32,733 nucleotides of DNA from Octopus bimaculoides. Lineage: Eukaryota. Shown here in pieces: positions 7,201 through 10,200 of this stretch; within the stretch, counting starts at the first letter, position 1, and each line of letters opens with the position of its first letter. The position numbers were made by a program, and so were the translations under genes. The stretch covers positions 41,627,083 to 41,659,815 of the forward strand of contig NC_068986.1 in NCBI RefSeq assembly GCF_001194135.2, read 5' to 3'. The notes under the pieces are model-generated. The model worked only from the letters and a program-made list of their open reading frames with translations. It was not told the origin of the DNA and ran no database searches.

Positions 7201-10200
7201 CCAAATAATCTGATGAACTAATCTTTCATATTTTACTTGATTCAGTCATTAGACTGTGGCCATGCTGGGGCGCCACATTGGAGAACTTTTAGTCAAATGA
7301 ATCGATCCCAGTACTTGTTATTTTAAACCTGGTATTTATTCTATCAGAATCTTTTGCTGAACTGCTAAGTTATGGGGATGTAAACACACCAACTGGTTGT
7401 CAAGCAGTGGTGGTGGTGGTGGTGATGGAAACACAAACACAAAGACACACACAAATATACATATATATATATATATATATATATATATAAAATTATGATA
7501 AGGGTGTTGAATGATTACAATGCCAGTCTGCTAGAAATAGACCCCAAATGATCTATGAACCACTTAGATTATTACTCTGCTACACAAGGTTGTAAGCAAA
7601 GAAAATAGACAGTGAGGATTTATAAAATAATTTGAATAGTACCATATCTATAGATTTCACGGTTTGAGTTATTAAAAACCCTTTCTGCTCATCAGTGGCA
7701 AAATACCAAATGTAAATAAATGAAAAATACATTATACATACCACCATAAGCACAAATAATGTACATGCATTTCACACGTATTCACGAATTCACTCCTATA
7801 ACATATTTACTGCAGAACTATTCTGAGTAAATAAGCACATGGTTGAAATAGGTGCTTGGATTTAAATTCATGAATACGTGCAAAATGCAGATACGGTATT
7901 TGTACTTATGGCAATATGTATAATGTATTTATTTATTTACGTTCAGTATGTTGCCACTGATGATTGGAAAGGGTTTTTAATAACTCAAACCATGAAGTTT
8001 ATAGATATGGTACTATCCAAATTATTTTATAAATCCCCACTGTCCATTTTCCTCACTTACAACCTTGTGTAGTGGAGTAATAATCTAAGTAGTTCATAGA
8101 TCATTTGGGGTTTATTTCTAGCAGACTGGTGTTGTAATCATTCAACACCATTATCATAATTTTTATATAAATTAACCATTATGGTATTTTTAGTATGCTG
8201 GCCATTGATAAATCATTAAATAATGACTTTATGCTAATTACGTGCATATATATATATATATATATATATATATATATATATATACATACACACACACACA
8301 CATGATGGGATTCTTTCAGTTCCTATCTATCAAATCCACTCACATTGCTTTGGATGGCCCAAGGCTATTGTAGAAATCATTTACCCAAAGTGCCACACAG
8401 TGGGACTGAACTCTGAACCATGTGGTTGGGAAACAAGCTTCTTACTACACAGCTATGCCACGCCTGATTAAAAAAAAAATTAGAAAAGTCATTAAGTTAG
8501 CTTTCAAATTCATATAGTTTATTCCTACAGCACTGAACAAACACTTGATTGTTTAGGCTCTCATTTTTGTGTTTTAATGTCACTCTATGAGGATATAACA
8601 AAATGGCATCATGAAGCTGGTACATAAATAAACAAATGAAACGTTTGGTTACTGTTTGTTCGAAATTTTATTATGTATCTTCTTTATTTGCTAACATTAT
8701 ACATATGGTGTAACTAAACAACAAGTAAATAATGATATTGCATTTCTAGTGCACACACATGCGTGCGCACGCACACATGAGTACTCAATTGTTTTTCTCT
8801 TTTACTTAAAATAATATATGCTAATATACTTGAGCCATGTTATCTTCTCTGTAATTCTAGTCTAATTTGATTTTGTAAACAATTCTGAGTTTTCACAAAC
8901 TTTTAGAATGTAATACTAACTTACTACTATTTTTTTAATATACAGCAGTGATGTCTTTGTGAATTTATGTAATTAACTTAGGACTTATTGTTTGCAGAAA
9001 GTATTTTCTTTAGGTCGATTAAATCATTGGCTGCAGGAAAACTGCATGTAAAATTATTTATTCAAACTCATTGGTAAAACAGAGGTGGGAGTACAAATAG
9101 TAATCAGCTATATAGATGTGTTAGAGCTGTGGTTCCCAAACTTTTTCAGGCTACCGCCCACTTAACACCCAGGCTGCATTCCTAGTGCTACACCACCACC
9201 ACCACCACCACCATAAATGTAGACCACTTTCTGCAGCAAACTCAAAACAACTGTATTTCACAAATAAAGCTTCAACCTAATTAACCTTTTATTTTTATTT
9301 TATTTTTTTTTTTACATTCATTAACCCATTATTGCCCCACTTTGCTTCAACATCTCCTGGATCTTTCTATCACCCCCAAGGGGATCAGTACTGCCCACTT
9401 TAGGAACCACTGCATTAGAGTATTTACTCTGGTATTTATTTTGATGTTAAATCAGGCTGCTGTCAGATTTACTTCTTAACCTATCAGAAGTTGGTTTTAT
9501 GTACCACTCTAAGATACAGTATTTTCTGACATACAAGTTAACATAGTATATAGTGTAGACATTCAAATATCATCATTATCTTTCCATATCCTGCTGCATT
9601 TCACATGGAGTTCTATTTCTTCTCTAAAGTCATCTTGGTGTATAAGTCAACCTTCTTTATTTGGCTGTAAATTTTAGTCTGAAAAATTTGACTTGTACAC
9701 TGGAAACTACAATTTTATTGTTTGTTTGTTGTTGGTTATTTTGTAAACTAAAATTATACTGTTTTATCTTGTCTTTCTAGTAATTTTTTTTTATTAATAT
9801 GTCTGTCTGTAGAAAACTGACAAATCCAAAATTATATGATCTATTGCAGTTCTAAGAATCCTGAAGAAGCAGAATTAGAAGATACTCTAAATAAAGTGGT
9901 TAGTGATTTATATTTTCTTTGCTTTCAACTACAGAAAAAAAAAAGTACTTTTATACACTTGTTATATACTGAAACTAACCCTTTTTTTTTTGTTTATAAC
10001 TATTTATTATATTTTCTTTCTTGTAGATGATTGTCTTTAAGTACATTGAAGACAAAGATGTTTTCCAGAAATTTTATAGTAAAATGTTGGCTCGGAGGCT
10101 AGTATTACATATGTCTGCAAGTGATGATGCTGAGGCTAGCATGATTTCCAAATTAAAGGTATATAAGATTTTTGCTGATAGACGAACAATCTAAATTTTA

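Follow-up and report, generated by a model that had tools for sequence, protein, structure and literature searches.

MITEs of the Stowaway type, derived from Tc1-mariner transposons, are non-coding, shorter than 800 bp, AT-rich and hairpin-capable, have inverted-repeat ends, and lie at TA, often in introns and within other repeats. The palindrome that we describe here, from an intron of the Octopus bimaculoides CUL1 gene, is alike in all these respects, but the terminal inverted repeats (TIRs) of these MITEs measure 10-50 bp against arms of about 300 bp in the palindrome, and its termini are unlike the TIR of a mariner found in the same window (the whole stretch of DNA that was analysed, 32.7 kb). 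Whole-element palindromic non-autonomous DNA transposons are represented by the "PAL..." families of C. elegans in Repbase, some of which are TA-flanked, and by Angel of zebrafish. Like the octopus palindrome, these elements are nearly all one long inverted repeat with a short loop, non-coding and with TA flanks; we know of no sequence relationship between them and the palindrome, and the resemblance is a lead only. In Drosophila Foldback (FB) elements very long inverted arms also dominate the element, but FB arms are made of tandem subrepeats, and the octopus arms contain none. Pairs of inverted Alu copies in human introns, the chief target of promiscuous ADAR editing, likewise form an intramolecular, imperfect dsRNA of about 300 bp in pre-mRNA and are equivalent in action at the RNA level; they are two separate retroposon copies, unlike the single element with a 74-nt loop considered here, for which editing is a prediction. 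Human PATRRs, the AT-rich palindromes of fragile sites, share a length of several hundred bp, an association with AT-rich sequence and the capacity to form hairpins, yet they are near-perfect, almost spacerless and AT-rich throughout, whereas the octopus palindrome has a 74-nt spacer, 12% divergence between its arms and complex arm sequence.

What, then, is this palindrome, and how might it have reached its present position? The features of the locus are as follows, in window coordinates.

6820 to 6930, plus strand: CUL1 exon ("exon C") encoding 36 residues, preceded by an AG acceptor and followed by a GT donor at 6931
7222 to 7454, plus strand: left (5') half of the host SINE, ending in a CA-rich internal tract; aligns with an intact copy (20306-20697) and with one from Octopus sinensis
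7455 to 7489, no strand: left (TA)17.5 tract (Tandem Repeats Finder), the internal microsatellite of the SINE, expanded
7490 to 7790, no strand: left arm (repeat finder and gapped alignment); the A at 7489 is common to arm and TA tract
7791 to 7864, no strand: apex, 74 nt between the arms and unpaired with them; stem 7804-7817/7821-7833 with loop CTA, and side hairpin 7833-7838/7852-7857
7865 to 8163, no strand: right arm (repeat finder and gapped alignment)
8164 to 8170, no strand: TATATA(A) spacer between right arm and tail, pairing with the end of the left (TA)n in the fold
8171 to 8246, no strand: tail, 76 nt, left partner absent
8246 to 8288, no strand: right (TA)21.5 tract (Tandem Repeats Finder)
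8289 to 8470, plus strand: right (3') half of the host SINE, starting (CA)n TGATGGG and ending in an A-run
9848 to 9901, plus strand: next CUL1 exon, encoding 17 residues

The host intron spans 6931-9847 (2917 nt, 2.9 kb), and the hairpin starts 559 nt downstream of the end of exon C at 6930, in agreement with the distance of about 560 nt given in a preliminary description of the locus. CUL1 lies on the plus strand, so the hairpin is carried in the sense pre-mRNA. Exon C is 73% identical to human CUL1 over 37 residues (tblastn with a human CUL1 query). An exact look-up of the CUL1 exon ORFs returned no identical record, and no cephalopod protein was among the matches to the composite CUL1 exons, all of which were at most 555 aa long, full-length CUL1 possibly having been length-filtered.

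The palindrome is foreign DNA inserted in the TA tract of the SINE. Uninterrupted SINE copies carry a TA/CA-rich tract at the position of the left (TA)17.5, and the junction TATATACACACATGATGGG of the right half recurs in another copy at 24095. When 7490-8246 is deleted in silico, the SINE halves become colinear with the intact copy (322/404 columns, 79.7% identity) and the rejoined junction is the internal TA-rich tract; both arms are foreign to the SINE sequence, and nothing else in the window matches the block. The preliminary description was thus right in placing (TA)n on both sides of the block, here (TA)17.5 and (TA)21.5, and in having the SINE halves rejoin around it. TA is present on either side, but inside (TA)n a duplication of 2, 4 or 6 bp would look alike. 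Other repeats repeatedly interrupt the SINE copies in the window. Elsewhere in this SINE family, a (TA)n tract is broken by a 130-N assembly gap. Strings of the SINE sequence had no match in a full-text literature search.

Within the insertion, the repeat finder reports two arm pairs, 7489-7724/7928-8163 (236 nt, 90%) and 7725-7790/7865-7930 (66 nt, 83%), and gapped alignment of 7489-7790 with 7865-8163 unites them in a single stretch of 302 columns, 87.7% identical, of which 265 match and 34 mismatch, the rest being a single indel of 3 nt. The outer 100 columns are 94% and 92% identical, against 78% for the innermost 50, which bears out the earlier claim of pairing along about 300 bp that is best in its outer part. 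The inverted repeats are terminal at both ends: pairing begins at 7489/7490, ends at 8163/8164 and is extended by the TA repeats on each side, giving a palindrome of about 675-680 bp, or 757 bp with the tail. The arms are complex in sequence, AT-rich and 31% GC. Internal repeats of the IR/DR or FB type were sought in them and rejected, Tandem Repeats Finder reporting only the flanking TA arrays and a direct-repeat scan being empty. The branched apex, with both its stem (7804-7833) and its side hairpin (7833-7857), recurs in the RNA and DNA folds. The description had also stated that the block has no ORF. It is indeed without coding capacity; in the literal sense ORFs do exist, as mirror images of 57-68 codons, the longest stop-to-stop frame (68 codons) being mirrored in both arms, and they are without homologues: the 64-aa and 57-aa arm ORFs gave no identical record by exact look-up and no match in a profile search of 5.8 billion proteins.

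How old are the arms, and were they once alike? Transitions account for 29 of the 34 mismatches in the gapped alignment and transversions for 5, as had been noted from inspection. CG/TG/CA-type differences occupy 11 dinucleotide sites, where 4.65 are expected by chance (P = 0.002), and cover 18 of the 34 mismatches. The minimum reconstructed arm contains 12 CpGs and has a CpG o/e of at least 1.37, compared with 0.19 in the intron and 0.16 in the host SINE; six CpGs are left in the arms today. Outside CpGs the arms diverge by 5.8%, with mismatches evenly spread (7 and 9 in the outer and inner halves), so the gradient in arm identity reflects CpG density and not arms that were unequal initially. 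A CpG-rich arm in a CpG-poor intron implies that the DNA was newly arrived and almost perfectly palindromic at first, and that its decay took place in situ. The transition excess, which the preliminary description had tied to RNA pairing, is ordinary CpG decay and bears no relation to pairing. Abnormally fast CpG decay was considered and rejected: a rate of about 50x per dinucleotide corresponds to about 23x per nucleotide, which is within a factor of about 2 of mammalian values and not anomalous. The Jukes-Cantor (JC) distance is 0.123 between the arms, or 0.062 per arm.

Fresh arrival followed by decay in situ makes both an assembly artefact and a duplication of old resident DNA less likely. 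That a single arm was mis-assembled as an inverted duplicate is hardly credible. The 130-N gap mentioned above does indicate that TA tracts are hard to assemble, but a misassembly would give near-identical arms, and these differ at 34 positions plus an indel (12%), with the biological signature of CpG decay and transition excess, around an asymmetric apex of 74 nt. A local inverted duplication of resident DNA is rejected, the arms being foreign to the SINE and having had a CpG o/e of at least 1.37 against 0.16-0.19 around them. For the same reason, the rule proposed earlier, by which a single-copy result would mean a local inverted duplication, is too simple.

The reading that we favour, with confidence somewhat better than even, is that the block is a dead non-autonomous DNA transposon, a whole-element palindrome that is MITE-like and can be called "foldback" in a loose sense. 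The earlier proposal of a foldback non-autonomous DNA element thus stands as regards a foreign, non-coding, whole-element palindrome, and fails in the strict FB sense, the arms lacking tandem subrepeats. The palindrome spans to both ends of the insertion and stops at TA repeats on each side, from which we infer transposition as the mode of arrival and targeting of TA. TA-targeting transposons exist in the genome, as shown by a Mos1-type mariner fragment in the window (30780-31631; HTH_48, E = 6.9e-23) and by the O. vulgaris genome, in which Tc1-Mariner makes up 119 of 191 Mb of TIR elements and TIR elements underwent a burst at JC 0.09; the JC distances of the palindrome, between arms and per arm, fall in the range of that burst. 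The window mariner, the sole candidate compared, was rejected as the autonomous partner, the ends of the palindrome (AAAATTATGATAAGGG...) matching its TIR no better than chance (p = 0.53). To our knowledge these ends correspond to no known terminal motif. An arm 20-mer had 0 matches in a metagenome collection that holds no octopus DNA, and a SINE control also had 0. Besides these unmatched ends and the lack of a second copy in the samples given below, two points tell against the favoured reading: arms of about 300 bp are long for a MITE, and the 76-nt tail needs a second event, whether an insertion that came earlier, the addition of filler DNA or the survival of part of another copy.

The tail lacks a left counterpart, as first described. 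It weakly resembles the outer ~55 nt of the arm, in right-arm orientation (score 19 against 9.5 +/- 1.7 for shuffles, 1 of 1000 shuffles being as good), and this match ranks second among 1192 window segments, the only better one being to low-complexity sequence; the likeness is no more than suggestive. An origin of the tail as a copy of the region at 23275 was rejected, that match being to low-complexity sequence only. One rival history, which we judge rather unlikely, is that a non-palindromic foreign segment (apex, one arm, TATATA and tail) landed in the (TA)n and that the arm was soon copied in reverse when replication switched template or folded back, with the self-complementary TATATA/(TA)n and the short apical inverted repeat as priming sites. 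It would explain the partnerless tail without an extra event; the right arm stops precisely where the self-complementary TATATA (8164-8170) starts, and the 13-bp inverted repeat of the apex (7804-7833) could be the inner switch point. It also fits with the search for a second palindrome copy, which found none in the 32.7 kb of the window or the 21 kb of O. sinensis sequence scanned, samples that are sensitive only to a family of more than about 250,000 copies. It still requires an unexplained first insertion without terminal repeats, however, and the duplication must have followed arrival quickly, the arms having had at least 12 CpGs (o/e 1.37) when identical in surroundings of 0.16-0.19. In-situ inverted duplications are, moreover, rarer than MITE insertions in TE-rich genomes.

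A different history takes the suggestive likeness of the tail to the outer end of the arm at face value: two copies of a dispersed repeat of about 300 bp would have inserted head to head in one TA tract, the tail being the stump of a third copy and the palindrome coincidental. The repeated interruption of SINE copies in the window by other repeats agrees with it, and 88% identity is typical for two members of one family. We nonetheless regard it as highly improbable, since the arms share the outer end nucleotide and are equal in length inside, their non-CpG divergence is just 5.8% and evenly spread, and two insertions of one rare family less than 75 bp apart are improbable in themselves.

On the favoured transposon reading, an older SINE already lay in the CUL1 intron, and the element would have inserted at a TA within its (TA)n some 10-20 million years ago, when it was a CpG-rich, almost perfect hairpin of about 675 bp. 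The element would then have decayed in place, mostly by methylation-driven change of CG to TG/CA, with about 3% other substitutions per arm. Transcribed with the plus strand, it would be carried by every CUL1 pre-mRNA, and its hairpin of about 300 bp would be promiscuously hyper-edited in the nucleus by ADAR and lost when the intron is discarded.

The predicted RNA structure is very stable. The minimum free energy of the palindrome RNA is -421.9 kcal/mol, compared with -148.7 +/- 6.3 for shuffles (z = -43), and that of the DNA is -261.9 against -63.8 +/- 3.0 (z = -67). When the 2917-nt intron is folded as a whole, every one of the 275 paired left-arm bases has its partner in the right arm, the longest uninterrupted helix measures 58 bp, and the left and right TA tracts pair in a 28-bp helix. 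Extrusion of a cruciform from the DNA would be disfavoured by the 74-nt spacer and the 12% arm divergence. The sense pre-mRNA hairpin contains 265 Watson-Crick pairs and, from the transition differences, 11 G.U and 18 A.C pairs, such pairs having been anticipated in the preliminary description. The predicted A.C positions are 7598, 7600, 7607, 7615, 7635, 7708, 7743, 7774, 7870, 7882, 7891, 7904, 7913, 7914, 7945, 7992, 8055 and 8091. Whether this is the longest dsRNA of the CUL1 region, as was claimed, depends on the measure: the inverted pair 4-426/4417-4824 exceeds it in arm length (426 columns at 75.6% identity, with 343 predicted pairs), although the loop of that pair spans 4 kb and none of its helices is longer than 30 bp. 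In a metazoan survey of ADAR substrates, in which Octopus had the highest editing rate, the substrate criterion was a reverse-complement match of at least 50 nt and at least 80% within 2 kb, and A-to-I sites cluster at such matches. With 302 nt at 88%, a 74-nt loop and a position on the sense strand of a CUL1 intron, the palindrome far exceeds this threshold, and it is likely to be a promiscuous ADAR substrate.

Could the hairpin have been selected as an RNA, as an hpRNA, a small-RNA precursor, or an editing or splicing element regulating CUL1? As a very stable structure of the sense pre-mRNA that lies 559 nt away from a splice donor, it would suit such a role, which we consider extremely improbable. 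There is no sign of selection for pairing: 11 G.U pairs stand against 18 A.C pairs, and the doubly decayed CpGs gave 3 tandem G.U against 4 tandem A.C. Rfam returned 0 matches at the gathering score, and the sub-threshold ones (mir-297, mir-466 and similar) fall on TA/CA repeats. A dedicated siRNA pathway was not found in 32 molluscs including O. bimaculoides (PMC12479628), and the suggestion that the palindrome is a source of endo-siRNAs is therefore unlikely to hold.

The palindrome most likely has no function of its own today and is an ordinary genomic passenger, an old non-coding insertion. Alone it is of minor importance: introns commonly harbour non-coding palindromic insertions, and we see no hint of selection here. 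Its arms are a clean, datable case of the speed of methylated CpG decay in an octopus gene body, and with its 18 predicted A.C positions it is a precise, testable candidate ADAR substrate in a housekeeping gene. A bolder proposal, which we think very unlikely, is that octopuses have a family of CpG-rich whole-element palindromic transposons homing specifically to (TA)n, of which this would be the first to be described, its target here being the microsatellite within an abundant SINE; introns across the genome would then receive near-perfect 300-bp dsRNA hairpins from this family as substrate for the unusually active cephalopod ADAR, and the tail would be a stump left by a previous insertion at the same site. 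If copies genome-wide were found to prefer SINE-internal (TA)n, microsatellites in SINEs would be landing pads that make long intronic dsRNA in cephalopods.

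What kind of sequence interrupts a SINE inside the CUL1 gene of Octopus bimaculoides? A tblastn search with a human CUL1 query, serving for exon location only, gave ten colinear CUL1 exon matches on the + strand of the window, and two of these bracket the palindrome:

6820-6930, + strand, CUL1 exon C (tblastn with human CUL1)
9848-9901, + strand, next CUL1 exon (tblastn with human CUL1)

Because the exons flank it on the + strand, the palindrome is intronic and transcribed in the sense orientation, within a 2.9-kb intron whose donor site lies 559 nt upstream. The SINE that hosts the palindrome has several copies in the window and is also found in Octopus sinensis GCA_006345805.1 (82.6% over 396 nt, in a 21-kb piece, L002), a sharing that, together with that of a (CAT)n-tailed repeat, puts the window in an octopus. 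Uninterrupted copies (window 20306-20697 and L002:1050-1460) contain a CA/TA-rich internal tract. With 7490-8246 excised, the two host halves are colinear with these copies in an end-to-end alignment (322/404 columns), and the rejoined junction falls within that tract. The block is bounded by (TA)17.5 and (TA)21.5. Both the rejoining of the SINE halves and the flanking (TA)n of the preliminary description are therefore borne out.

The palindrome is about 675 bp long, and its inverted repeat extends to both extreme ends, with TA on either side. The repeat finder resolves two adjoining segments, 7489-7724/7928-8163 (236 nt, 90%) and 7725-7790/7865-7930 (66 nt, 83%); in a gapped alignment the arms span 302 columns, of which 265 match, 34 mismatch and 3 form a single indel (87.7% identity). 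The fold of 7480-8250 is strongly non-random, both as RNA (-421.9 kcal/mol versus -148.7 +/- 6.3 in dinucleotide shuffles, z = -43) and as DNA (-261.9 versus -63.8 +/- 3.0, z = -67). The branched apex, a stem at 7804-7833 plus a side hairpin at 7833-7857, appears in both folds, and the 76-nt tail (8171-8246) has no left-side counterpart, so that the arm pair, apex and tail described earlier all stand. When the whole intron is folded, all 275 paired left-arm bases have right-arm partners, in helices of 58, 35, 27 and 24 bp, and the TA tracts pair with each other in an extra 28-bp helix. The ORFs of the palindrome are mirror images of 57-68 codons, for which protein searches found no homologues.

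The arm mismatches comprise 29 transitions and 5 transversions, and CpG decay accounts for the transition excess. Eleven dinucleotide sites of CG/TG/CA type hold 18 of the 34 mismatch columns, against 4.65 sites expected when the same substitutions are placed at random (P = 0.002); seven are TG versus CA doublets, meaning that CpG was lost from both arms, and four are CG versus TG. The CpG observed/expected ratio is 0.29 in the whole window and 0.19 in the intron (6931-9847) once the insert is excluded, low values that evidently reflect germ-line methylation of the CUL1 gene body. It is 0.16 in the host SINE and 0.73 in the younger SINE copy at 20306-20697. An arm reconstructed by restoring only the visible CpG-type sites has 12 CpGs and a ratio of 1.37. 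CpG alleles are about 75% decayed versus about 3% change per arm elsewhere, a per-nucleotide ratio of about 23, which differs from mammalian values by no more than about twofold. Arm identity falls from outside to inside (94, 92, 88, 88, 86 and 78% in 50-column bins), a gradient that reflects CpG density, since the 16 non-CpG mismatches are evenly spread (outer half 7, inner half 9). It follows that the arms were nearly identical when they became a pair, and the sequence fresh at that time, distinct from CpG-depleted resident DNA. Duplication of an old local sequence is ruled out by arms that were near-identical and CpG-rich at pairing. The same decay pattern and fresh state make an assembly artefact very unlikely as the source of the palindrome, the two arms differing in their CpG decay. 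Between the arms the JC distance is 0.123, falling to 0.061 when CpG sites are left out; with an octopus calibration of JC 0.09 to about 25 My (quoted in PMC13282606), the pair would be very roughly 10-20 My old.

The block is foreign, non-coding DNA, and with its length, its palindromy to the very ends and its TA borders it is built like a non-autonomous TIR transposon that is a palindrome over its whole length. In O. vulgaris, Tc1/mariner, whose insertion site is TA, is the dominant TIR group (119/191 Mb). TA repeats on both sides make a target-site duplication unreadable, and the palindrome ends do not resemble the TIR of the window's Mos1-type mariner (p = 0.53). The element had been called a foldback element. 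Unlike FB elements in the strict sense, its arms lack tandem subrepeats (tandem- and direct-repeat scans found no tandem or IR/DR-type subrepeats in them), and it is therefore not one of these. Neither the 32.7-kb window nor L002 contains a second copy, these samples being sensitive only to families above about 250,000 copies per 2.8-Gb genome. A metagenome scan returned nothing for the arm, and nothing for the SINE control either. The serious rival is that the arm was duplicated in inverted orientation in situ, through template switching at (TA)n and the self-complementary TATATA at 8164-8170. Such an event neatly accounts for the partnerless tail, but it requires an initial insertion that it leaves without explanation and, given the CpG result, must have come soon after that insertion arrived. 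The tail shows a weak resemblance to the outermost ~55 nt of an arm (score 19 versus 9.5 +/- 1.7; rank 2 of 1192 window segments), which would fit, suggestively, the stump of another copy. A head-to-head pair of copies of a 300-bp repeat is less likely. A decaying, palindromic MITE-like insertion producing predicted intronic dsRNA is the most likely identity of the block.

Several other repeats and an assembly gap lie in the window:

30780-31633, - strand, truncated Mos1-type mariner (HTH_48 domain E = 6.9e-23, ORF 30955-31440)
23965-24094, assembly gap of 130 N inside a (TA)n tract
6548-6728, 10682-10878, 12620-12806, 17819-17978, 21665-21916, 24274-24454 and 25081-25217, second abundant SINE-like repeat, (CAT)n/(ATG)n tail
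3607-5370, + strand, intronic LINE fragments (Exo_endo_phos_2, weak match E = 0.0087; RVT_1 E = 6.5e-12)

The mariner, just downstream of CUL1 exon 30420-30551, lacks the catalytic part; its 5' TIR is CCAGGTTCAGAAAGCAAAGTAGGGAATGTTGAG, with TA before the TIR at about 31631, and among its named relatives a SETMAR-like protein from O. sinensis is the closest (69% identity). A mariner HTH_48 protein with 73% identity to that of the window is encoded on a 51-kb contig from JGI sample 3300002938 (CVPL005L_10000191); no octopus repeats were found on this contig, so it comes from another organism. Right of the gap is the SINE right-half junction TATATACACACATGATGGG, the same as at the palindrome, and left of it a non-SINE direct repeat of ~400-bp period (23223-23507/23629-23881, 78%); this region may be another case of foreign DNA lodged in the TA tract of a SINE. 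The (CAT)n-tailed repeat sits inside copies of the first SINE at two places, 21641 and 24134-24480, and also occurs in L002.

At the RNA level, every CUL1 pre-mRNA would carry a ~300-bp hairpin. In a 22-species survey, A-to-I sites concentrate where a stretch of 50 nt or more has a reverse-complement match at 80% or above within 2 kb, and the editing rate is highest in octopus. The hairpin surpasses this dsRNA criterion several-fold, and with that editing rate promiscuous hyper-editing is expected, most strongly at the 18 A.C mismatches; it would leave the mRNA unaffected. Selection for an RNA hairpin is a less likely origin, as pairing selection is not evident: the transitions give 11 G.U versus 18 A.C in the sense RNA, the doubly decayed CpGs give 3 tandem G.U versus 4 tandem A.C, and Rfam returned 0 families at threshold. 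The proposed cruciform site is disfavoured, as the 74-nt spacer and 12% arm divergence work against extrusion in duplex DNA. A role as endo-siRNA source is unlikely because a dedicated siRNA pathway was not found in a survey of 32 molluscs including O. bimaculoides (PMC12479628). The palindrome is the longest dsRNA of the region only in a qualified sense. Its arms and pairs are exceeded by the inverted pair 4-426/4417-4824 (426 columns; 343 predicted intermolecular pairs versus 275), but that pair has 75.6% identity, a 4-kb loop and helices of at most 30 bp. It flanks CUL1 exons 1159-1305 and 2352-2477 and might form intronic dsRNA or promote exon circularisation; its left arm may extend past the window start.

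New here are the attribution of the arm differences to CpG decay and, following from it, a probable fresh arrival as a palindrome, along with the octopus origin, the placement in the sense strand, and corrected views on siRNA and longest dsRNA. The structure is real and of an ordinary kind, and little is at stake unless a genome-wide (TA)n-targeting family exists.
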